The notes under the pieces are model-generated. The model was not told the DNA's origin. It ran no database searches and was given only the letters and a program-made list of their open reading frames with translations. A program made the position numbers and the translations under genes. 37,311 bases of DNA from sequence record NC_048037.1, one strand, 5' to 3'. Positions 12,114-29,112 of the stretch are shown one piece after another (the stretch's first letter is position 1; the number at the start of each line of letters is the position of its first letter).

Positions 12114-12383
12114 TTATAGTCCTCCTAATAGTCTTCTGAATACTCCACCTAAGCCTCTGAATACGCCTATTCTTCCGAACGCTCCCAGCACTAAGGCTAT
12201 TACTACTCCTATTACAGCCACAACTCCGAACAGTTGACCTAATGGGTTAGCGAAGCTACTTAAAACGTTTGCAAGGCTTTGTACGGCATATGCTATAAAG
12301 CTTATGAAGCTTGTTAACAATGATGTTAGGGCATTTGTTAAGGTCGTTATAGCTGAACTTATGCTACTCACGATCTCTAACAC
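12114..12383 (-). CDS. Small hydrophobic/amphipathic protein (89 aa), probable virion envelope protein
   Basis: S/T/L-rich amphipathic helix, hydrophobic stretch LFGVVAVIGVVIALVLGAF, basic tail. Confidence 0.75.
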   Translation of the reverse strand: MLEIVSSISSAITTLTNALTSLLTSFISFIAYAVQSLANVLSSFANPLGQLFGVVAVIGVVIALVLGAFGRIGVFRGLGGVFRRLLGGL

Positions 12384-16991: not shown

Positions 16992-17396
16992 ATGTATTTC
17001 AACGGAGACATAGTTGAAGGGATATTACGAGTAGGTACGGCTACGCGTGTAAACGGTGAGTTATTAACGAGACCCCTGTTACTTTTTGGAAAATTTGTGT
17101 TGTATGGTAGTTTTATAACTAGGGAGGTGGAAAGGGAGACACTGGAAGGCAAAACTACTACTGTAAACGAGATAATTCCCATTAACGGTATAATATTTTC
17201 CAAATTTATACAATATATTTTTGTTTTAAGTTATATAACAGATCCCGATACGGGTTTAACATACGCGTACATGGTACTGTTGACACAGCGTACGTTAAAC
17301 AAGCTCATTAATTACTATAAGTTCTGGGATATCGTAATACCGAATATAGATCAGGAATTATATGAATATACAATTGAAATAGGTGAGTTAAGATGA
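16992..17396 (+). CDS. Hypothetical protein (134 aa, start MYFNGD)
   Basis: ATG at 16992 at leaderless distance from a TATA box. Confidence 0.7.
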   Translation: MYFNGDIVEGILRVGTATRVNGELLTRPLLLFGKFVLYGSFITREVERETLEGKTTTVNEIIPINGIIFSKFIQYIFVLSYITDPDTGLTYAYMVLLTQRTLNKLINYYKFWDIVIPNIDQELYEYTIEIGELR

Positions 17397-17596
17397 GTGC
17401 GAAAGATACTTCAGTATCTCTTGATATAGTGATAGTAATAGGGCTTGTAGCAATAGCAATAAGTATAATATTCACGTTCACTGTAAATCCTCAGTTAAGT
17501 AGTAATACAAATTTGATACAAATAGTATACGTTATCGTGACCGGTATAATAAGCATATTGAGTTATATAACGGGGAAAAATACAAGAAAACAATAA
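17393..17596 (+). CDS. Small two-TM membrane protein (67 aa)
   Basis: Two hydrophobic stretches and a basic C-terminus; GGTGA SD. Confidence 0.75.
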   Translation: MSAKDTSVSLDIVIVIGLVAIAISIIFTFTVNPQLSSNTNLIQIVYVIVTGIISILSYITGKNTRKQ

Positions 17597-18671: not shown

Positions 18672-18937
18672 TTTTAATAATTACAGCAATAATATTAATT
18701 GTAGACCCTGATATATATACTATTATTGCTTTTGTTTCATCCGTTATCGGTATAATATATACTACTTATAACCTAATGGTAAAGGAGATAGAGAATACTG
18801 TGTATCGACTCTACGAACAAAGACTTAGGAGTGACATCCACAACGACATAGAACAAATCATATACCAAGTTTACGAGCAAAAACTAAAAAATGATATAAA
18901 GGACATGATTGAAAATTATTTACGTAATCCTAAGTAA
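18635..18937 (+). CDS. Membrane-anchored helical protein (100 aa)
   Basis: GGTGA SD; N-terminal hydrophobic segments followed by a duplicated helical motif. Confidence 0.75.
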   Translation: MLKSRLYSAIFVILIITAIILIVDPDIYTIIAFVSSVIGIIYTTYNLMVKEIENTVYRLYEQRLRSDIHNDIEQIIYQVYEQKLKNDIKDMIENYLRNPK

Positions 18938-19212
18938 TTCAGATATAGCCCGTAACCCAAGTAAATAGGTAAAACTACCAGCATCATGATTAGGTCAAAC
19001 GTGTACACTGCGTAAAAAGTGACCAGCCCTATTACATTACTTATAATAAGTGTTGAGAGTTTAAGGTTTCGCATTATCGCGAAAACGTTTTCATACGTTA
19101 GCCATACTAAAAATATACTTAATAATATATAATTATGATAACAGTGAAGTATCAGTGCAAACAAAATGTATAAAGCATATGCGAAACGTATTTCGTGATC
19201 AGTTTTTTGCAT
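18916..19212 (-). CDS. Multi-pass membrane protein (98 aa)
   Basis: Three to four hydrophobic segments. Confidence 0.7.
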   Translation of the reverse strand: MQKTDHEIRFAYALYILFALILHCYHNYILLSIFLVWLTYENVFAIMRNLKLSTLIISNVIGLVTFYAVYTFDLIMMLVVLPIYLGYGLYLNYLGLRK

Positions 19213-19539: not shown

Positions 19540-20466
19540 TTAGAAGAGTTGCAATTGCTTAATCACCTCTTTAACATAAAATTTTTCAGCGTGTTTTTTA
19601 ACTTTTCTCGATAATTCTTCATAATCTTCCCGTTTCATTCCCCTTGCGTATTCCGTCAACTCCAACATTTCCTTTTCATCAAAATAATAGAAACGATGGG
19701 GCATTGCAGGAGTATCAATTACGTCGTAACCCTGACACTTGACGGAGAGACCTATTAACCAGTCCTTATAAGCGTGACACTCCGGGAAAATGGGTATCGT
19801 ACCCACTCCCATAGCCTCAACGGGAGGGAGACCGAACCCCTCACTGTGGGATAACGCTAAGTAAAACCTAGCCCTAGCTAATAACAGGTACTTCTCTTCC
19901 TGTGTTAGTGAATGGTATTTTATATCCGCAAAAGAATCATGAGATACGAGGACTTTCTTACCCTTCACGAGACGGTAAAGTTTTACATTCTTTTTATCAT
20001 ATATGACAGTGTCGTTATCCATATACACATAACGTGAAACTTTAAACCACTTTTTATCATTAGTCCTAATATTCGCTCCTATCATTACGAAATCCAGATC
20101 TTTCGTTTTCACTTCCGTTTTACTTATTGTCTTTTCATCTATGGGTCTCGGGACTATCCCGTCAACGTGGACACCGGCTTCCCTTATCATCTCTGCGTTC
20201 CAACTGGATGTGGTGTAAACTTTACCCTTGAAGTCCGGGAACTTTTTCGTTATGTGGATTGGTGTGTCAACCCATATGATAATGTCATCTCTCTCCTTGT
20301 GGTGCTGAAAACTGTTGAAAAAGTGATATGCGTCACTTATGTTCAGTTTCCCTACGCTGAACACTACGGGTATCAATGTGTAATCCGTTAGATTGTTGTT
20401 TATCGTTTGTATTATATACGTGAAACTACACGGACTACAAGGTACATGTGTTATAATACCGTACAT
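19540..20466 (-). CDS. GT-B fold (GT4-like) glycosyltransferase (308 aa)
   Basis: YTTSSWN, IVPRPID, LSHSEGFGLPPVEAMGVG. Confidence 0.9.
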   Translation of the reverse strand: MYGIITHVPCSPCSFTYIIQTINNNLTDYTLIPVVFSVGKLNISDAYHFFNSFQHHKERDDIIIWVDTPIHITKKFPDFKGKVYTTSSWNAEMIREAGVHVDGIVPRPIDEKTISKTEVKTKDLDFVMIGANIRTNDKKWFKVSRYVYMDNDTVIYDKKNVKLYRLVKGKKVLVSHDSFADIKYHSLTQEEKYLLLARARFYLALSHSEGFGLPPVEAMGVGTIPIFPECHAYKDWLIGLSVKCQGYDVIDTPAMPHRFYYFDEKEMLELTEYARGMKREDYEELSRKVKKHAEKFYVKEVIKQLQLF

Positions 20467-20498: not shown

Positions 20499-21158
20499 CT
20501 ATGCGAACTGAATTGTAAACGGAACGAGAAGTGTGTTAGGAGCGTTTAGTTTGAATTGTAAAGCGAAAGGTAAAGTTGTGGTTGAGACGTAAGTGGTACC
20601 GGCACTATTCGTAGTATCAAAAGTAATAGTGAAGTTAGTATAAGTGGTAGACGTGGTTTCAAAACATGAAAATAGGAATGTAATGTTACTCTGTTGTACA
20701 ATTACTGATTGTAATGACGTACACGTACCACTAGCGATACTGTAACTCTTATAAGTCCCGGAAAAGCCAAAGTTTAGTATCCTTTTCACAAGTCCTACGG
20801 GGTCATCTACTATCCATATCCATTCAATTGTATACGTACCCGGTGATAGATAAAGCGTAGTATTTACTTGGCTGGCAAGAAATTGAAACCCGTTAAATGT
20901 GGCATAAAGTAAAAGGCTCGTGACCTTCACATTGGCTATAAGGCTAAACGTCCCAGTCCAAACAAAATTACTATATGTCATTGTCACATAGATACCTTCC
21001 ATATAAACCGTAGGTTTTGATGACCCGGATGGAGGTGAATTAGTGAACACTTTATAAAGTACCGAGAGTAATGATGTAAAATTTATGTTATTTTTTATCT
21101 CATATAATACTTTACCTTGCTGTTTTATCCTCACGATACCGTCAATTTTAACTTTCAC
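20499..21158 (-). CDS. Virion-end beta-sandwich protein, paralog family (219 aa)
   Basis: S/T/N-rich, N-x-S/T sequons, shares family motifs (see finding). Confidence 0.75.
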   Translation of the reverse strand: MKVKIDGIVRIKQQGKVLYEIKNNINFTSLLSVLYKVFTNSPPSGSSKPTVYMEGIYVTMTYSNFVWTGTFSLIANVKVTSLLLYATFNGFQFLASQVNTTLYLSPGTYTIEWIWIVDDPVGLVKRILNFGFSGTYKSYSIASGTCTSLQSVIVQQSNITFLFSCFETTSTTYTNFTITFDTTNSAGTTYVSTTTLPFALQFKLNAPNTLLVPFTIQFA

Positions 21159-22252
21159 TATGATGTCACCGTAATCGCTTCAAGAAAAGTAATAACGGGT
21201 TCTGATGATGATGGAGCGGGTATTTGAATGTTAAAATTACCAAATATTTCAAGACCGCATCCTAAAAATGCTTGATTAGGCGGTGCACAAGCTGAACATG
21301 ACAAGTTAACCGCTATTAAGCCCAAATTAGTAACCAAAATACCATTAATATATCCTATTTCACTACTACTACTGATCGGGTTATTGAATAACGTTAATAA
21401 TATAAAATATGGTTGTCCGTTACCTGAGATATATACAAAACCGTTTACTTTACTAACGCCTATAGTACTATAGTTTTGTCCACAATAAGTATTACTTGTC
21501 CCCGCACTAGTAATAACTAGAATACCGTTTTGAACCACAGGATAATAACCCGTATTATTATAGAACATGAATACAAGCCATGTAATTGTATTATATTGCT
21601 GTGGATTCGTATAGTTATTTATAATTTGTATCTCCCATAGGAATGAATATATAGATGAGCTATTTAATGTAAGAGACAAATTTAATTCTGCAAATATTAC
21701 AGGTCCATAATATGTAACGTAACTAGTATATGTACCACTAGCACAACCAAAATTAACATTGGGACATCCAGTACCAACGGTAGCATATGCAAAACTTATA
21801 TATAATTTTAATTGACTTATAGTCACAGTTGAACCGGGAGTATAAGTTGCAATATAATATATGATACCTGTTGTTGGACTTATAACTTGTGGAATACCTG
21901 TAACTGCAAGATTCACATTAACTCCACTATTAAGTATTATAATCAGTTGACCACTATATGAACCCGATGATACGGCGGTACTTTGTCTCAAAGCACCGCT
22001 AATCGTATTGAGAAAATAATAAGCTCCGGCTTGCGTAACTTGGTTGTGAGCAGATGTTATTTTTTTAACCTTATCCACAACCTTTACCTTTACTCTCGCT
22101 ATCTCACCCAGTTTCGGACTCCTACTAATCATATCAACTTCCCTAGTTCCGGTACCTTCAATGATATGTAAATTTAGTTTGAGTTTTATTTCTCTCTTCT
22201 TCATCTTCTTCAACAAATCCTCAAAGTTAACATTTTGAACCTTAACCTTCAT
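21158..22252 (-). CDS. Virion-end beta-sandwich protein, paralog family (364 aa)
   Basis: HNQVTQAG, TISQLKLY, SIYSFLWEI; Cys-containing inserts. Confidence 0.8.
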   Translation of the reverse strand: MKVKVQNVNFEDLLKKMKKREIKLKLNLHIIEGTGTREVDMISRSPKLGEIARVKVKVVDKVKKITSAHNQVTQAGAYYFLNTISGALRQSTAVSSGSYSGQLIIILNSGVNVNLAVTGIPQVISPTTGIIYYIATYTPGSTVTISQLKLYISFAYATVGTGCPNVNFGCASGTYTSYVTYYGPVIFAELNLSLTLNSSSIYSFLWEIQIINNYTNPQQYNTITWLVFMFYNNTGYYPVVQNGILVITSAGTSNTYCGQNYSTIGVSKVNGFVYISGNGQPYFILLTLFNNPISSSSEIGYINGILVTNLGLIAVNLSCSACAPPNQAFLGCGLEIFGNFNIQIPAPSSSEPVITFLEAITVTS

Positions 22253-22288
22253 ATAGTTATTTAAGTATCGCTAAAATAAAAATCTTAT
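22253..22288. promoter_or_regulatory. Overlapping divergent promoters
   Basis: TTATTTAA at 22257-22264 (+) and a T-rich box at about 22284-22277 (-). Confidence 0.55.
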
Positions 22289-22981
22289 ATGAGTAGTACA
22301 AATGCGGTTTACAGTGCATTAGTCAAAAACTCCCTTAGTGTAAGTTGGCAAATAATAACATCAACCGGTTCTACAATATCACCCCAAGCAATAATATTCC
22401 AAATAAACTCAAGAACTGAATTTATAATAGTACTCACGGATGATACATTTAACTCTTATACGGCTACTCAAGTCGTGTTATTAATTAACGGTTATAAGAT
22501 GTTAACCATCCCCATAAATATAGTGAAACAATCCTATCAAACACTCGCAATAGCATTACAAGTTACAGTTGAAGCACAGCCTTGGGAAGCCAACCTAACA
22601 CAAGATATACTATACGCATTAGTAGGTTATTTGTACAATTGGACGGTAACACAGTGGTATCTCGTAATAAATAGACCTATCCTAGCACACACAACAAGGA
22701 CTACCACAGCAGTACATACCACATATTATTGTGCTACATCACAAGTTTCATCCATTGGAAGCGGTAGTGCTAATTACTCTGTAGCCACAACAACACCATC
22801 AACCGTTTTATCACTCTCAATAAACTATTCCCAATGTCAAGCGATCAAACCAACAACACTTATAATCAGTGATTCATTAGGTAACAAAAACACTACATTA
22901 ATATCAGGCATTGAATCAACAACGTGTCCTTACGGTAAATCATGCACTGCAACACTTATTATCCATTTCAACGCATTTTAA
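22289..22981 (+). CDS. Virion-end beta-sandwich protein, paralog family (230 aa)
   Basis: YTATQVVLL motif, Thr-rich, four Cys. Confidence 0.75.
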   Translation: MSSTNAVYSALVKNSLSVSWQIITSTGSTISPQAIIFQINSRTEFIIVLTDDTFNSYTATQVVLLINGYKMLTIPINIVKQSYQTLAIALQVTVEAQPWEANLTQDILYALVGYLYNWTVTQWYLVINRPILAHTTRTTTAVHTTYYCATSQVSSIGSGSANYSVATTTPSTVLSLSINYSQCQAIKPTTLIISDSLGNKNTTLISGIESTTCPYGKSCTATLIIHFNAF

Positions 22982-22984
22982 AAT

Positions 22985-23341
22985 ATGGCACAAGCAGTAC
23001 TTGGTATATTGGGATCTGTAGGTGGTGGGATAGGAGGAGGACTAAGCGGTATTGCGGATGCCATAGGTAGGGTTGTAAGCGGGATAGTTAGAACTGTGGG
23101 AAGGGGGTTTGACACCATTGCTAGAGCTTTCGGTAAATTCGTTGACTGGTTTTCACGAATCGCGTCACGACTCGCAAGGCTTATATTACATTATTTCCGT
23201 ATCCTAGCACGGTACTTTTTAGTATTACTTAAATACTCAGCTAGAGTAATGATAAACTTTTACAATAATTTTCAACGTGACCCTCTAACTTCATTACAAT
23301 TTATTGGTAGTATGGCAATACTCATAAATAGTGGTCTATAA
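22985..23341 (+). CDS. Amphipathic 11-residue-repeat protein (118 aa), probably structural
   Basis: GLSGIADAIGR/VVSGIVRTVGR/GFDTIARAFGK/FVDWFSRIASR... Confidence 0.75.
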   Translation: MAQAVLGILGSVGGGIGGGLSGIADAIGRVVSGIVRTVGRGFDTIARAFGKFVDWFSRIASRLARLILHYFRILARYFLVLLKYSARVMINFYNNFQRDPLTSLQFIGSMAILINSGL

Positions 23342-23751
23342 TGAGCATCCCGATTCCTGATGAAATAAAACCGTTTACAAAAAACATACAATTTGATGTT
23401 AATTCGCAGTCGTTTATAGTAACGATATCTGCAAAACTATTCTTTTCAACACTATTAGCAAACCAGACAGTAAACCAAAACACGACAAATTTCAACATTT
23501 TAAATGTCACGAAAGCCAACGAAAAGATTTACGTTTATGTAAAGCCTAACGTTAACCTAACCGACCCTTTCGAGGGGTTTGAAGGGAGATTCGTTATTAA
23601 CCAAGCAAAATTAGATAAGATGATACTTGAGAACGCACAAAACGTAAGAATTTATTATAAACAAGAAAACGATGACCTCTTAATCCTACTTGTAGTACCG
23701 ATGGGTGATATAAGTGCCAAAAGTCCAAGTACTTCTCCAGTTGGCTGGTAA
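23341..23751 (+). CDS. Hypothetical beta-rich protein (136 aa)
   Basis: TAATG coupling inside the structural block. Confidence 0.75.
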   Translation: MSIPIPDEIKPFTKNIQFDVNSQSFIVTISAKLFFSTLLANQTVNQNTTNFNILNVTKANEKIYVYVKPNVNLTDPFEGFEGRFVINQAKLDKMILENAQNVRIYYKQENDDLLILLVVPMGDISAKSPSTSPVGW

Positions 23752-24415
23752 AGTAGAAATTGACGCTACGTACAAGAACACAATAAACAACTCGTTCATA
23801 AATTACCTAAACCAAGCGTTCCAGGGTCAACAGCCACTAATTAAATCGTACCAAATATACGAATCTATAAACAACGTTACCGTACCAGCGACAATAACTA
23901 AAACGACTACAGAGTTAAACCAAATCACGATCACACTGCAAGCCCTACTTCAGAACCTCCAGTCCAACAACGTAGACTTGCATTTACAAGCTGTCCTAAC
24001 TAACAACAGTCTGGTAGAAATAGCGTCAGTCTCAACGACAGTTCAAGTACTGTTAGGAAAAGCCGTGATAACGTGGACTATAATAATAAACATTAACACA
24101 TTCCAATCCGGTATACTCGTAAACTTCTTTCCCCTATACCAGTTCTTATTGAACTTCTTCACTAACAGTACACTATTAAAACAACAAGCTCCGCAGATTA
24201 ACGTTACTCCCACACCGTACGCACAAAATATACAAGGTCTGTCATTCACTATTATTTATAACAACTACCAACAAGGTGGGAATTGCCCGATTGTGGTAAT
24301 GACCCTTTATTACATATTACTGGGTAATACGGTATTGAGTGTTGAGTATGGCTTTATATGTACACCGTCACCATCGCTATTAAACTTCTTCGAGTTCTCA
24401 TTAAATATTTCATAA
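23714..24415 (+). CDS. Virion-end beta-sandwich protein, paralog family (233 aa)
   Basis: GGTGA SD; GKVEIDATYKNTINNSF, AVITWTI. Confidence 0.75.
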   Translation: MPKVQVLLQLAGKVEIDATYKNTINNSFINYLNQAFQGQQPLIKSYQIYESINNVTVPATITKTTTELNQITITLQALLQNLQSNNVDLHLQAVLTNNSLVEIASVSTTVQVLLGKAVITWTIIININTFQSGILVNFFPLYQFLLNFFTNSTLLKQQAPQINVTPTPYAQNIQGLSFTIIYNNYQQGGNCPIVVMTLYYILLGNTVLSVEYGFICTPSPSLLNFFEFSLNIS

Positions 24416-24492
24416 TATATAAAAATGTATAACCAAAGGATTTCATATCATTGACTATGAGACTTTTTATATTCACAATAAAATATAATTTC

Positions 24493-24801
24493 ATGCAAGC
24501 TGAAAAAATATACCTTATGGAGTTAATTGAAAAAATAAAAAATTTCGCAGACAATGAACCACCGAGCATGAAAACGTTCTCCGTTAAGCCCGACTTCACG
24601 AAAGAAGAATTAATAAACGCTATGATCCGGGTAGGTTTTGAATTAACACACATAGATTACGTGATAAGACATACTACACAAACCAACATGTGGGAAATGG
24701 AATTCAAACTAAACGAACATAAATACTGTCTTATAACTACGTTCATAATAATAACGGATGGCTCAACAACTGATTATAATATAACTTGTTACTACAGATA
24801 A
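24493..24801 (+). CDS. Hypothetical protein (~102 aa, start MQAEKI)
   Basis: ATG at 24493 with TTTTTATA about 25 nt upstream. Confidence 0.65.
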   Translation: MQAEKIYLMELIEKIKNFADNEPPSMKTFSVKPDFTKEELINAMIRVGFELTHIDYVIRHTTQTNMWEMEFKLNEHKYCLITTFIIITDGSTTDYNITCYYR

Positions 24802-24907
24802 TACGTTTACTTATATAGCACGTGATTCATGATAATCATTTTTTTACTCGTACACGTATTTTTACATATGAAAGTGAAGTTGAGAAGTAAAGTTGAGGTG
24901 AAACTTA

Positions 24908-25897
24908 GTGCAAATCAAACTGAGGGGCAGAGTACAAATAGTAATAGGAAAGACAAGAATAGCGAAAACAAATGACGTCAGTTCGGATTTCGCTATCGCA
25001 CTAGGAAAAACGGTACTTTCAGGCACATTAGGAGGTTACGGTTACGGATCCGGGTTCGCATTACCAACACAAGTAGTAATCGTATTACTTAACAATAACG
25101 CAGTAGTTACAACAATATCAACAAACATAACTAAATTCAACGACCAAATAACAACCAACGGTGAACTAACAAGTGTAACGTTCGTAGGAAGTGACGCAAC
25201 ACCGGTACAATATACATTTAACCAGCTTGAATTATACACTGTAGTCCAGAACACACTTTACCTGAAAATAGCCACAGTAACATTACAGAACCCACTAACA
25301 AAAAACATCAACGATATAGTAAACGTAACGTGGACTGAGGAAATAATATCATCATCTTCACTAATAAATTTCACAAACACACAACAAGCGTGTTCACAAT
25401 GCTCAACCACATGTAACACGTCAACGTTATCACAAGCGTCAAACACGGCAAGTGTGGTTAACCTCGTGTGGGCATTACTCATAATACCGAACGCTAATAC
25501 AATAGTCTCACAAATATCAACCCCGTTGTCAAGCTACATAACACAAGTATACACGTATTACTTAGCAAACAATAAACTACCTAACATTCTAGGAATAACA
25601 AACATTATCCTAACAGACCAATGCCTTAACGTGATAGAAAACGCGTCAATTGTATCACCTATCATAACGTATGGTTTAACCGGAACCGAAGCCATAGTAT
25701 CACTCGCAGTGTTCATTACACCCGCACAAAGCGTGTATTACGCGTTACCAGTCTTCACAATACAAGGCGTACTATCTGCGTTTTTAGGAATAGTACAAGT
25801 ACAAAACCCGAGTCAAATAACAGCAGGTCAAATAAGCATAATATTACAAATACCGTACGGCTCATCAACATTACAGGCACTAAACATAAATGAGTGA
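24908..25897 (+). CDS. Virion-end beta-sandwich protein, paralog family (329 aa)
   Basis: GAGGTGA SD at 24895-24901; YTFNQLELY, IVNVTWTE; Cys-rich linker CSQCSTTC. Confidence 0.8.
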   Translation: MQIKLRGRVQIVIGKTRIAKTNDVSSDFAIALGKTVLSGTLGGYGYGSGFALPTQVVIVLLNNNAVVTTISTNITKFNDQITTNGELTSVTFVGSDATPVQYTFNQLELYTVVQNTLYLKIATVTLQNPLTKNINDIVNVTWTEEIISSSSLINFTNTQQACSQCSTTCNTSTLSQASNTASVVNLVWALLIIPNANTIVSQISTPLSSYITQVYTYYLANNKLPNILGITNIILTDQCLNVIENASIVSPIITYGLTGTEAIVSLAVFITPAQSVYYALPVFTIQGVLSAFLGIVQVQNPSQITAGQISIILQIPYGSSTLQALNINE

Positions 25898-26777
25898 TAA
25901 AATGCCCGTTACTACCGATTTCATCAATTTAGCAGAACAACTTACACTTAACGGATATAAGAGTACATCCGCATACGTACAAGGTCTCCAAGTCCAAAGC
26001 ACGTTTTACATAGTCCTATTAAATAACGGGAACGTGGTAGCACAACTCCCCGTTTCACAATTCAAGTATAACGAAATAAGCCAAAACGAGCAAGCACTTA
26101 TCTACACTGCAATTGACAGCAGTTCAAACACGTATACGTTCAACGAGGTACAATTATGGGCTGGTAACCAATACATTATAACAGATGATATACTACAGCA
26201 GAGCGTCACGAAAAACCCGGGAATTTCCGTAACCGTAAACGTGGCAATAGAACTTTCAATAGAGACTAATACTTATCAAGGAACGATCAACATAACACGT
26301 ATAACACCCGTAGGACCTGTGAAAACACCGATCCCGGCATACTCATTCTGGTTATACGTATCGGGTAACTGTCACGCCATATCCACACCCATCTTCATAG
26401 TAAATTACATCATCCTCACGTTACTTATACCAACGTCATTCTATAATAATATACAAAACACGTTGTTCATGCAAACGTATAACCAACTAAACGTCCCCAT
26501 AAACGAGTTTAACGGAATCTCACTAATTGCCGTAGCGTTACCTTCAGCGATTATAAATATCGCAAATAGGCTAATCCCGCAAAGCGTGTCTTATCAATGT
26601 ACGACCTTACCACCTAATACACCGTTTAAACCTTCCACGACATATTCCTCAACTCTTGTAGGAGCATTCATGGACATGGGAGGAATTAAAGTACAAGTAA
26701 TAACAATACTCAATAAGCAACTACTCGCCACAACAAACTATTACATATTTCAAATAGTGGTGATACAAAATGAGTAA
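25890..26777 (+). CDS. Virion-end beta-sandwich protein, paralog family (295 aa)
   Basis: VLLNNGNVV, YTFNEVQLW, SVTKNP; clear paralog of 24908-25897. Confidence 0.8.
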   Translation: MSDKMPVTTDFINLAEQLTLNGYKSTSAYVQGLQVQSTFYIVLLNNGNVVAQLPVSQFKYNEISQNEQALIYTAIDSSSNTYTFNEVQLWAGNQYIITDDILQQSVTKNPGISVTVNVAIELSIETNTYQGTINITRITPVGPVKTPIPAYSFWLYVSGNCHAISTPIFIVNYIILTLLIPTSFYNNIQNTLFMQTYNQLNVPINEFNGISLIAVALPSAIINIANRLIPQSVSYQCTTLPPNTPFKPSTTYSSTLVGAFMDMGGIKVQVITILNKQLLATTNYYIFQIVVIQNE

Positions 26778-28521
26778 CCCACTAATAGATATCGAGAAAT
26801 TATTTACCGGCATTTTCAGACCCGTCACTAACGTACTTAGCGGAGGCATTAACACAGTAGCGTCAATTCCTCATGATATCGAAAATTTCGGGAACTCGGT
26901 TGTGAAGACATTTAACACACTAGTACGATATCTCGCACAAATACCAAGTGATATATTCAACTTTCTATCACAAATTCCCGGTGCGATCCTCACCGGGTTA
27001 CACATGTTCGGTTCATGGATACTCTCAGGGTTCCAAACTTTAGGTTCCCACATATTGGGAGCGTTAAAAATAGCGTTCTCACCACTGGTTGACGCCATAC
27101 ATTACATAGCATCCCATATACCCGACCTAATAAACTTCTTCGCTTCAATCTACACCGACCTAAGAAACATTATAAACACGATACATAACAACCTTGTAAA
27201 TATCTTCACAACAGCGTTCAGACTCGTACAAGACGCGATTGAAATCGTGTTCGGCTTCCTAAACGTGGCTCCTCAGATATTCAGAGCATTTAGTATATTT
27301 GTACAAGATGCAATAAATTTCGTAACAACACAAGCTACAACACTAGTATCATCCGCATCACAAATGTACAAACACTTTACGGACTCAGTACCCTTTGACA
27401 TCTTAAAACAAGAATCATCAAAATTCGGCAAAGCTACGGCAAGACTGATCGGGTTTAACACTGCAATGGAAATAATGAAAAGTACAATAAGAAGGAGTTG
27501 GCTATCACAAAACATATCACCCTTAACAAGGGCGTTAATGTTAGCGTTCAGCCCTGTGGTAGCGGGTATCAGCGGGATGTTTGCGGAAACAATGATACAA
27601 GCGTTCTACCCGGATATCACATCAACCACAATAAAGAGGTATACGCCACCAACCACGTCCACGACACTATTCCCGTACCATACAACTCATGTAGAACCAC
27701 CATCGTTCGCGTCAAAGAGTTACATAACAACACTGTCACAATTAACACCACCACCGGCTCCTCCATTGTTACCGCAATTCAAACCGGGTCACATAATAAG
27801 CATATACATCGAAGACGTCATAACACTAAACCAGTTCGTAGTAACCGGTGGTCTGGTATCAGCATCACAGTACGCACAAATAATATCTGACACACTGAAC
27901 TTACAGTACAATTTAGTGGTAAGACTGACACCCGTAGTTTTAATAACCGCCACAGACTTACTAAGTCCCTTACTGTCATCATCCATTACCACAGCAGTCT
28001 CACAAAACGTGAACACGATCACAGTAAACGCTTTCGCAGAAGTAGGACAACTTGCAGTACCCCTAGGCTCATCTGTGTGTACCACATTAATCGCTCCGGC
28101 TTCATACGTTTACGGTGAAAACACGGTAGATTACTTAAATGTAGCATACAACTTATGTATAAACATAAACCAGGCAATACTTGACTTCATTAACTTCTAC
28201 ATCACAACACAACCACCACCCGGTAATGTACCCACTACTACTGTAAACATCTTCATCACAACACAACCACCACCCGGTAACGTACCTACAACTGTAGTAA
28301 ACATTACGGGTACTACAATATTACCTCCTCCTAATATACCAACCACCATATTCAGTATAACAATAACACCCGGATTACCACAATTCACGGGACATACTAC
28401 TCTTGCGTTCACAACTCAAAACGTGACAACCAGAATCGGAGGGACTGCTACAACAATAGTTATAAATTACACGCCAACTATAACAATATGCCTACAAGGG
28501 GATGGATGTTATTCAGCGTGA
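26770..28521 (+). CDS. Large structural protein (583 aa): 11-residue amphipathic repeats plus Thr/Pro-rich C-terminal repeats
   Basis: Consecutive 11-mer blocks in the N-terminal part; TTQPPPGNVPTT repeats. Confidence 0.85.
   Translation: MSNPLIDIEKLFTGIFRPVTNVLSGGINTVASIPHDIENFGNSVVKTFNTLVRYLAQIPSDIFNFLSQIPGAILTGLHMFGSWILSGFQTLGSHILGALKIAFSPLVDAIHYIASHIPDLINFFASIYTDLRNIINTIHNNLVNIFTTAFRLVQDAIEIVFGFLNVAPQIFRAFSIFVQDAINFVTTQATTLVSSASQMYKHFTDSVPFDILKQESSKFGKATARLIGFNTAMEIMKSTIRRSWLSQNISPLTRALMLAFSPVVAGISGMFAETMIQAFYPDITSTTIKRYTPPTTSTTLFPYHTTHVEPPSFASKSYITTLSQLTPPPAPPLLPQFKPGHIISIYIEDVITLNQFVVTGGLVSASQYAQIISDTLNLQYNLVVRLTPVVLITATDLLSPLLSSSITTAVSQNVNTITVNAFAEVGQLAVPLGSSVCTTLIAPASYVYGENTVDYLNVAYNLCININQAILDFINFYITTQPPPGNVPTTTVNIFITTQPPPGNVPTTVVNITGTTILPPPNIPTTIFSITITPGLPQFTGHTTLAFTTQNVTTRIGGTATTIVINYTPTITICLQGDGCYSA
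28189..28350 (+). repeat. 54-bp tandem repeat (two close copies plus one degenerate) encoding 18-aa Thr/Pro units
   Basis: CATCACAACACAACCACCACCCGGTAA identical at 28200-28226 and 28254-28280. Confidence 0.9.
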
Positions 28522-28527
28522 TGTAAT

Positions 28528-29112
28528 ATGTTAGTATGCATACCTGTTGGATGGGTAACTTATACTGAACCACTTCTCAACACTGTAAAGTGGGCAAATG
28601 AGGGTAAATTCAAATTCGATTTCGCCATATCAAACCGCGTAGACTTAAATAGAAGTGTATGCATATCTAAAGCGAAACTGTTAAAGGAAGACCTAATAAT
28701 GATAGACTCAGATATAAACGTATTAAACCCACCATTACAGTTAAAAGAAATATTAAAAGAAGATGAACGGGAAGCCGATATCGTATTGGGGATAGCAGTA
28801 AGCCACCTGGGAGTTTTAATAGACCCATTACCGCCTAAGGACAAAGACCTATACGAAATAAATTGGGGATCATTATCATTCGTTTACATACCGTTCAAGA
28901 CATTAAGAAAACTGAAGCACATAGCTAAATACCCGCAAAATATAAACATGTACATGACGTACAAACCCTACACATCAGAAGACGTTGAATTCATAAGGAG
29001 ATTAAAAAAGAAAGGGTTCAAGGTTATGGCTGACAAGAGGATAGCGTTAAACCACTTTAAACTCGTACCACTGCGTTACATGTCCCTTGAGTTCGAAGTA
29101 CAAACAAAATGA
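28528..29112 (+). CDS. GT-A fold glycosyltransferase (194 aa)
   Basis: MIDSD, AISNRVDLNRS, SEDVEF; paralog of 8629-9237. Confidence 0.85.
   Translation: MLVCIPVGWVTYTEPLLNTVKWANEGKFKFDFAISNRVDLNRSVCISKAKLLKEDLIMIDSDINVLNPPLQLKEILKEDEREADIVLGIAVSHLGVLIDPLPPKDKDLYEINWGSLSFVYIPFKTLRKLKHIAKYPQNINMYMTYKPYTSEDVEFIRRLKKKGFKVMADKRIALNHFKLVPLRYMSLEFEVQTK

Follow-up and report, generated by a model that had tools for sequence, protein, structure and literature searches.

The DNA analysed here, called the window below, is a stretch of 37,311 bases (NC_048037.1) that matches MH447526.1 at 100% identity. It is the full genome of Sulfolobus filamentous virus 1 (SFV1), an enveloped filamentous double-stranded DNA virus (Lipothrixviridae, Alphalipothrixvirus) whose host is an acidophilic hyperthermophilic archaeon. 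We found that six SFV1 proteins encoded in one gene module (gp41, gp42, gp43, gp46, gp48 and gp49), all deposited as hypothetical proteins, are paralogous: the relationship is established for gp41, gp42, gp46, gp48 and gp49 and well supported for gp43, and each protein consists of an N-terminal beta-sandwich of ~100–150 residues (the N-domain) joined by a hydrophobic helical connector to a C-terminal beta domain (the C-domain). On balance, we favor the reading that the genes of the module specify the terminal complex of the virion, with the six proteins forming part of the tapered "neck and mop" found at either end.

Paralogy and predicted fold of six module proteins

The six genes, with positions in the window, are as follows.

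gp41, 20499–21158, minus strand: 219 residues; N-domain at residues 1–125 (nucleotides 20784–21158), then a C-terminal beta-rich part.
gp42, 21158–22252, minus strand: 364 residues; a Lys/Glu-rich N-terminal extension (residues 1–50), an N-domain at about residues 51–215 (nucleotides 21608–22102) with an insertion, then a C-domain.
gp43, 22289–22981, plus strand: 230 residues; truncated N-domain at residues 1–98 (nucleotides 22289–22582), helix at 101–111, C-terminal beta domain at 116–226.
gp46, 23714–24415, plus strand: 233 residues; N-domain at about residues 7–127 (nucleotides 23732–24094), a hydrophobic helix, then a C-domain.
gp48, 24908–25897, plus strand: 329 residues; the best conserved member; N-domain at residues 1–148 (nucleotides 24908–25357), C-terminal beta domain at 227–316 (nucleotides 25586–25855).
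gp49, 25890–26777, plus strand: 295 residues; a clear gp48 paralogue; N-domain at residues 2–126 (nucleotides 25893–26267).

To relate these proteins to one another, sequences from seven lipothrixvirus isolates and 65 metagenomic loci, supplemented with a few from IMG/VR, were assembled into a local database of 2,978 open reading frames (ORFs), and profile links were sought with hhalign, with reversed profiles of identical composition and unrelated module genes as controls. By BLASTP, gp48 and gp49 were the sole pair detected among the module proteins (E 1.2e-5, 29% identity over 87 residues), and the other links therefore needed profiles. Iterative hidden Markov model (HMM) searches of the local database gathered ~170 sequences into a gp48/gp49 superfamily, with gp49 reached at E 1.7e-11 in round one, and families of 18, 23, 2 and 2 sequences for gp41, gp43, gp42 and gp46, respectively. 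The profiles of gp48 and gp49 aligned at 99.9% probability (E ~1e-37; reversed, E 0.25). gp41 aligned with gp48 directly (59.6%, E 8.9e-5, residues 1–125 against 1–154; reversed, E 0.052) and also with AFV2 ORF258 (82%, E 1e-5), which in turn aligned with gp48 at 96% (E 1e-8). Similarly, gp42 aligned with gp48 directly (50.8%, E 1.6e-4) and with the SIFV0060 family (95.2%, E 2.5e-8; reversed, E 3.4e-3), and SIFV0060 aligned with gp48 and gp49 at 88–93%. The direct alignment of gp46 with gp48 was weak (E 0.035); gp46 aligned with SSRV2 ORF41 at 83.7% (E 8e-6; reversed, E 0.037), and SSRV2 ORF41 aligned with gp48 at 85%. Overall, gp41, gp42 and gp46 are linked via intermediate lipothrixvirus families at 82–96% probability, with reversed controls at 10% or less, and alignments of gp40, gp44, gp45, gp47 and gp50 with the six all gave E ≥ 0.2. 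The signal of gp43 was weaker (E 1e-3 to 1e-2 against 0.19–0.34 reversed; E 0.009 against gp48 directly). Its residues 45–97 were always the aligned part, matching the C-terminal half of the N-domain, and the SIFV0060 HMM matched gp43 at E 3e-6.

An earlier note, made from the letters of the window, had described these six genes as paralogues sharing three groups of motifs. All the motif strings that it quoted are present in the proteins to which it attributed them, and the three groups fall in register with gp48 in the hhalign alignments. In the first motif, MKVKIDGIVRIK lines up with MQIKLRGRVQIV; at the central strand, SLLLY, SQLKLY and TQVVLL line up with NQLELY of gp48; and at the last strand, TYTIEWI, IYSFLWEI, TLAIALQV and AVITWTI line up with IVNVTWT of gp48. 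The N-domain signature comprises N-x-[IV]-[TS]-x-x-F in the helix, D-x-S-x3-Y-T-F-x-x-L-x-L and then [TS]-K-x3-D-x-[IV]-x-[IV]-x-W. The claim of six paralogues is thus upheld, for five by profile links with reversed controls and for gp43 by the weaker sequence signal together with its predicted structure.

Consistent with the profile links, predicted structures place the six in one fold. The AlphaFold2 (AF2) model of gp48, made from a 66-sequence alignment (pLDDT 85, pTM 0.87), shows a beta-sandwich at residues 1–148 (a hairpin, a helix at 26–38 and six strands), a helical and partly hydrophobic connector at 153–221 and a second beta domain at 227–316. The gp43 model (19 sequences, pLDDT 78.6) has a helix at 3–13, six strands up to residue 93, a helix at 101–111 and a beta domain at 116–226, which is the gp48 plan minus its first beta-hairpin; the order of secondary-structure elements otherwise agrees. 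Both models bear out the layout that the note had read from the sequence, an N-terminal domain followed by a helix and a second domain. When the gp48 model was compared with the predicted structures in BFVD by Foldseek, it matched SFV1 gp41 itself (E 1.5e-7, TMt 0.63), the SBFV2 orthologues of gp49 (E 3.7e-11), gp42 (E 9.2e-9) and gp46 (E 1.1e-4) and the gp43 orthologues of SIFV2 (E 9.9e-5) and SBFV2 (E 9.8e-4). Further, the top 14 BFVD matches of the gp43 model were all lipothrixvirus module proteins. Among the C-domains, no likeness common to all six was detectable. We define here a gp48/SIFV0053-like two-domain family, to which all six belong by signature or profile, by predicted fold and by module position, with gp43 weak by profile.

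The six are Ser/Thr/Asn/Ile/Val-rich beta proteins with a strong compositional bias, and their likeness might be a non-homologous by-product of that bias, as the single BLASTP link and the weak direct alignments of gp43 and gp46 with gp48 would allow; this is extremely improbable, because reversed profiles of the same composition score 2–6 orders of magnitude worse than forward ones, other module proteins of similar composition, gp50 among them, align with the six at no better than E 0.5, the motifs keep the same order and register, independent AF2 and BFVD models match one another, and positional orthology over seven genomes concurs.

Conservation and gene layout of the module

The module is conserved across the family. 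In hmmscan comparisons of the isolates in our synteny table (SFV1, SBFV2, SSRV2, SIFV, AFV2, AFV7 and SBFV3), the block common to all seven contains one or more glycosyltransferase genes, a gene for a gp50-like protein of 530–615 residues, a gene for a small gp44-like protein and several N-domain genes. The N-domain genes number six in SFV1, SBFV2, AFV2 and AFV7 and seven in SIFV; five were found in SBFV3, where gp29 fell below the scan threshold, and five in SSRV2, where a sixth, ORF39, was recognized by jackhmmer. Orthologues of gp48 are present in all lipothrixviruses examined; those of gp41 are SBFV2 gp48, SSRV2 ORF35 and SIFV0061, and those of gp43 are SBFV2 gp50, SSRV2 ORF37 and SIFV0058, whereas the equivalents of gp42 (SSRV2 ORF36, SIFV0060 and AFV2 ORF338) are assigned by position, from synteny. 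In the SFV1 paper, ORFs 44, 48, 49 and 50 are listed as common to other lipothrixviruses, and paralogy is absent from that account. The genes that border or accompany the six are as follows.

gp40, 19540–20466, minus strand: a glycosyltransferase by annotation that borders the module; homologues adjoin the module in SBFV2, SIFV, AFV2, AFV7 and SBFV3.
gp44, 22985–23341, plus strand: a small, helical, Gly-rich and hydrophobic protein of 118 residues, with homologues in seven of seven isolates.
gp45, 23341–23751, plus strand: a module gene for 136 residues, with weak relatives in SSRV2 ORF42 and SIFV0050 (phmmer, hmmscan).
gp47, 24457–24801: a highly charged gene amid the module.
gp50, 26770–28521, plus strand: 583 residues; the N-terminal half a periodic hydrophobic helical repeat, the C-terminal half Thr/Pro-rich.
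gp51, 28528–29112, plus strand: a putative glycosyltransferase by annotation and the other flank of the module; SBFV2 gp57 holds the same position.

Several of these genes overlap. The stop of gp42 and the start of gp41 share base 21158, gp48 and gp49 overlap by 8 nucleotides (25890–25897), gp49 and gp50 by 8 nucleotides (26770–26777) and gp45 and gp46 by 38 nucleotides (23714–23751); the overlapping gene ends suggest that these genes are co-transcribed and that their translation may be coupled. A 36-bp AT-rich spacer (22253–22288) separates gp42 from gp43, which are divergent. For gp45, the domain and PHROGs libraries searched gave no match. gp47 is 24.6% charged, compared with 6–10% in its neighbors, and its sole homologue, SBFV2 gp10, lies elsewhere in the SBFV2 genome, which has no gene at the gp47 position; gp47 has the appearance of a gene that was recently inserted here.

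gp50 accompanies the N-domain paralogues in every relative, and gp44 is homologous to its first ~115 residues (hhalign 98.7%, E 2e-16; reversed, E 5.8e-6). A link between gp44 and the envelope protein VP3 (gp20) was also considered; it scored 81% (E 1.3e-5), but the reversed profile reached 56% (E 1.1e-4), and the link was rejected as unproven. In the C-terminal half of gp50, residues 479–508 (28204–28293) contain the Thr/Pro-rich TTQPPPGNVPTT twice, 18 residues apart, followed by a degenerate third copy, LPPPNIPTT; this repeat could serve as an extended linker or as a region that is glycosylated.

Relatives of the N-domain extend beyond the isolates. A search of 1.84 billion representative proteins with the N-domain HMM returned 50 clusters, nearly all of them lipothrixvirus-like, with a few atypical members: two single N-domains of 132–137 residues (P0050 and P0051), a Lys/Glu-rich protein (P0048) and two Asp/Glu-rich proteins (P0046 and P0054). 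Two distant contigs that are not of Sulfolobales type were read, those of P0051 and of P0054, and on each the N-domain gene has a gp50-like gene nearby; the pairing therefore predates the Sulfolobales viruses. Distant relatives on metagenomic virus-like contigs include those at loci L084 (1562–1975) and L085 (1409–2068), both of which carry a gp50-like gene close by; the Asp/Glu-rich relatives are 219–253 residues long. The only known genes on the distant virus-like contigs are those for a Hjc resolvase and a concanavalin-type lectin domain, and L085 carries the Hjc resolvase together with a Laminin_G_3 lectin-domain protein. The distant contigs could come from filamentous viruses of archaea in non-acidic habitats that have yet to be described. 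One further candidate, a protein of 2,888 residues on a 584-kb contig (P0019) with 21 stretches matching the N-domain profile, was rejected as spurious, the matches falling in a low-complexity tandem repeat of ~100 residues that contains KNEITQEF.

Composition and a proposed role at the virion ends

The six proteins and gp50 have an extracellular-type composition. Lys, Arg, Asp and Glu together make up 6.4–9.6% of their residues (6.4% in gp46, 9.6% in gp41) against a median of ~25% for the SFV1 proteome and 27% in the neighboring glycosyltransferase, and Ser, Thr, Asn and Gln together make up 31–39%; they are the most charge-depleted large proteins of SFV1. A low-charge, polar-rich composition is the pattern of acid-exposed extracellular proteins in Sulfolobales. 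Outside the module, charge depletion this extreme (5.6–10.2%) is confined to gp20 (VP3; 12114–12383), gp32 (17393–17596) and gp38 (18916–19212); gp32 and gp38 are possible additional components of the envelope or surface.

In the SFV1 paper, the virion ends are described as a tapered neck carrying a mop of thin fibers, to which no proteins were assigned. The termini of lipothrixviruses are host-contact structures. A location of the six at the virion ends is plausible. The six would be low-copy, glycosylated and acid-exposed components of the neck and mop, with the conserved N-domains docking each paralogue to the others, or else to a scaffold of gp44 and gp50 at the envelope terminus, and the C-domains exposed as thin fibers that touch the host surface. 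The six would assemble as hetero-oligomers and bind receptors.

Such an architecture recalls the modular receptor-binding proteins of tailed phages, in which, as in the SFV1 module, the N-domain is kept, the C-domains differ and several copies lie in one module. The earlier note had described the second domain as the more variable one. Between SFV1 and SBFV2 orthologues, the N-terminal part is indeed more conserved than the C-terminal part in gp48 (67% against 51% identity), gp49 (63% against 43%) and also gp50 (56% against 44%), as in the phage proteins. As a general rule, the variable C-domain was abandoned, because it holds between orthologues for these three proteins only; the other four paralogues lack the contrast, which, with the absence of any detected receptor-binding fold and a role that is deduced, sets SFV1 apart from the phage systems. 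Within the same realm, Adnaviria, terminal host-attachment structures are known in P1070, the terminal fiber of the rudivirus SIRV2, and in the terminal claw of AFV1. The rudivirus differs in using one large protein, compared with six to seven small lipothrixvirus paralogues plus gp50, and no rudivirus record was among the matches of the family in tblastn or HMM searches.

Four observations weigh against the assignment to the virion ends. First, the virion proteins of SFV1 identified by published mass spectrometry are VP1–VP8 (gp11, 12, 20, 23, 24, 30, 33 and 34), a list in which the six are all absent, as are gp44 and gp50. Second, no known receptor-binding or lectin domain was found in any of the six in Pfam or PHROGs; the deposit label "putative lectin" of an N-domain relative, SBFV3 gp30, is not reproduced by Pfam either. 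Third, the C-terminal parts of gp41, gp42, gp43 and gp46 are no more variable than their N-terminal parts between SFV1 and SBFV2. Fourth, the hydrophobic connector helices would also suit membrane proteins located away from the termini. The first of these is weak, because the mass spectrometry was done by tryptic in-gel digestion of Coomassie-visible bands, each of the six is predicted to yield just 3–6 usable tryptic peptides covering 10–48% of its sequence, and the proteins probably carry glycans and occur in few copies. With so few tryptic peptides, the six may have escaped detection by standard tryptic proteomics.

The main rival explanation is that the six are membrane or secreted proteins of the infected cell, with a function in envelope acquisition, host-surface remodeling, superinfection exclusion or egress, rather than parts of the virion ends. 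Besides their non-detection in virions, this would suit the hydrophobic helix that follows the N-domain in each, the segments above 1.5 on the Kyte-Doolittle scale in several of the six, the UniProt name of AFV2 ORF289 (putative transmembrane protein) and the flanking glycosyltransferases, which could also modify host-surface proteins. We nevertheless regard it as improbable, because the extracellular, acid-adapted composition spans whole proteins of 220–580 residues, six to seven diverged copies with differing C-domains are the pattern expected of host-contact proteins, and the mass spectrometry was biased against the six. Further, terminal structures require several proteins, and no other SFV1 gene block has such a composition. 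Components of the terminal complex remain the reading that we prefer for the six.

Likeness to tailed-phage proteins and the meaning of the family

The earlier note had likened the six to the tail-fiber or baseplate anchor domains of tailed viruses, recalling DUF3751 (PF12571) in particular, and had suggested a module that links two unrelated virus realms. Predicted structures give this idea some support. In BFVD, the gp48 model matched ~25 predicted structures from Caudoviricetes (E 2.3e-8 to 1e-3, probability up to 1.0), among them two-domain proteins of 286–374 residues (from Podoviridae sp. ctlpi2, Pseudomonas phage ZC08 and Acinetobacter phage B09_Aci05) and many small proteins of 150–190 residues (TMt 0.45–0.65; for example, from Campylobacter phage CP8 and the archaeal tailed virus HGTV-1). 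One match is named "tail protein," and one is a mycobacteriophage minor tail protein; the four named as tail-collar fiber proteins were the weakest (E 2e-4 to 2.6e-3, probability 0.63–0.87, TM ~0.2). Against a PDB library of similar size, the best match of the gp48 model reached E 6e-3 with a meaningless superposition; with this as the noise floor, the stronger phage matches lie well above noise and the tail-collar ones marginally so. The gp43 model repeated the pattern weakly, with small Caudovirales proteins (E 0.013–0.03) right after its lipothrixvirus relatives and a tail collar fiber protein at E 0.079 (probability 0.99, 123 columns, root-mean-square deviation 5.2). By inspection only, the order of elements in gp48 1–148 (a strand, a helix and then six strands, the last of them preceded by a Lys) can be overlaid on the conserved blocks of the PF12571 alignment. 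Foldseek and HMM searches of the PDB gave nothing usable, a negative that is uninformative on the phage link because no PF12571 domain was found in the PDB by sequence.

In contrast, every sequence test went the other way. Pfam gave no family at E ≤ 1 for the six and no PF12571 or other tail-fiber family in 66 relatives, while the positive control, P2 gpH 1–151, was recognized as a full PF12571 domain (E 3e-57). In PHROGs, the six matched only lipothrixvirus families of unknown function, and tblastn of the family against 50,697 phage records returned lipothrixviruses only. By hhalign, scored without secondary structure, an 11-sequence PF12571 profile aligned with 16 lipothrixvirus family profiles and four single distant members at no more than 1.7% probability (E ≥ 0.03), the same as unrelated controls; its alignment came from 10 individually chosen phage loci, as homologue searches seeded with P2 gpH gave only ~98% identical sequences. 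None of the 50 clusters from the 1.84 billion proteins was caudoviral, and a broadened profile run against 5.8 billion proteins likewise found no caudoviral sequence, only archaeal-virus-like relatives. In look-ups of gene context for the Foldseek matches, Campylobacter phage CP8 showed no 186-residue coding sequence within its first 50 kb, and the 30–70 kb stretch of Pseudomonas phage ZC03, reached by an accession tried for ZC08, showed no 320-residue one. The gene neighborhoods also differ: the PF12571 genes of P2-like phages come after gpI, whereas in the SFV1 module Pfam and PHROGs revealed neither PF03406 repeats nor any homologue of baseplate, tube or sheath proteins.

The note had also counted tape-measure-like proteins alongside the six. 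Residues 1–360 of gp50 (26770–27849) do match more than 10 tape-measure PHROGs (E 1e-8 to 1e-3; best, phrog_5493 at E 8.7e-9), gp44 matches one such PHROG, and tblastn of gp50 gave weak matches to Microbacterium phage tape measure genes; like the phage proteins, gp50 is long and has a periodic hydrophobic helical repeat. However, reversed gp50 matches the same PHROGs (phrog_5493 at E 3.4e-6) and shuffled versions match none, and the signal therefore reflects the periodicity of the repeat and not common descent. In seven gp50 homologues, the Pfam and NCBIfam tape-measure models found nothing at threshold (best, Tape_meas_lam_C at E 0.035 in AFV7 ORF542), and neither a tail tube or tail chaperone gene nor a frameshift context accompanies gp50. 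Tape-measure homology of gp50 was rejected on the reversed-sequence control, and the case is a caution for tape-measure annotation from PHROGs alone.

How far does the phage likeness carry? Like PF12571 in P2 gpH, the SFV1 N-domain is an N-terminal domain of ~150 residues in modular proteins with other domains after it, the weak Foldseek matches of gp48 and gp43 include phage proteins of that name, and the strand-helix-strands order agrees by eye. The SFV1 family differs in lacking a Pfam match, a profile-profile signal, PF03406 shaft repeats and baseplate neighbors, and its virus is an enveloped filament with an archaeal host. Membership of the six in PF12571 is not supported, and the honest reading of the models is that the predicted N-domain fold is shared with, or similar to, that of an uncharacterized set of phage proteins. 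We consider it doubtful that the N-domain is an ancient virion-attachment domain shared with a widespread, uncharacterized family of small Caudoviricetes proteins and, more distantly, with the N-domains of tail-collar fibers. Equally unlikely is true homology with the baseplate-attachment domain of caudoviral tail fibers (PF12571/DUF3751 or a related, uncharacterized phage family), with the module common to Adnaviria and Caudoviricetes by descent or transfer. The BFVD matches above the noise floor, their weak repetition with gp43 and the by-eye overlay speak for such homology; against it stand the lack of sequence signal from Pfam to the billion-scale profile searches, the weakness of the tail-collar matches, which barely rise above noise while the strongest phage matches are uncharacterized, the module's lack of baseplate, sheath or tube genes, the periodicity artefact in gp50 and the fact that all structure targets are predicted rather than solved. 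The resemblance to tail-fiber anchors thus holds in predicted structure and fails in sequence, and a link between the two virus realms is not established by the evidence gathered. If the structural similarity did reflect homology, which is the minority reading, this would be a rare virion module shared between realms, and host-recognition modules would have moved between, or would predate, Adnaviria and Duplodnaviria, realms with unrelated capsids.

The literature found contains no description of these paralogues as a family, of their fold or of a possible place for them in terminal structures, and no protein assigned to the terminal, host-attachment structures of lipothrixviruses. Pfam has no entry for the family, and in PHROGs its members are spread over several families of unknown function. 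In its behavior it resembles modular attachment proteins known from other viruses, yet it belongs to no described family. Overall, the six to seven paralogues, together with gp44 and gp50, provide a candidate set for the lipothrixvirus termini that is kept across the family and in distant archaeal virus-like contigs.

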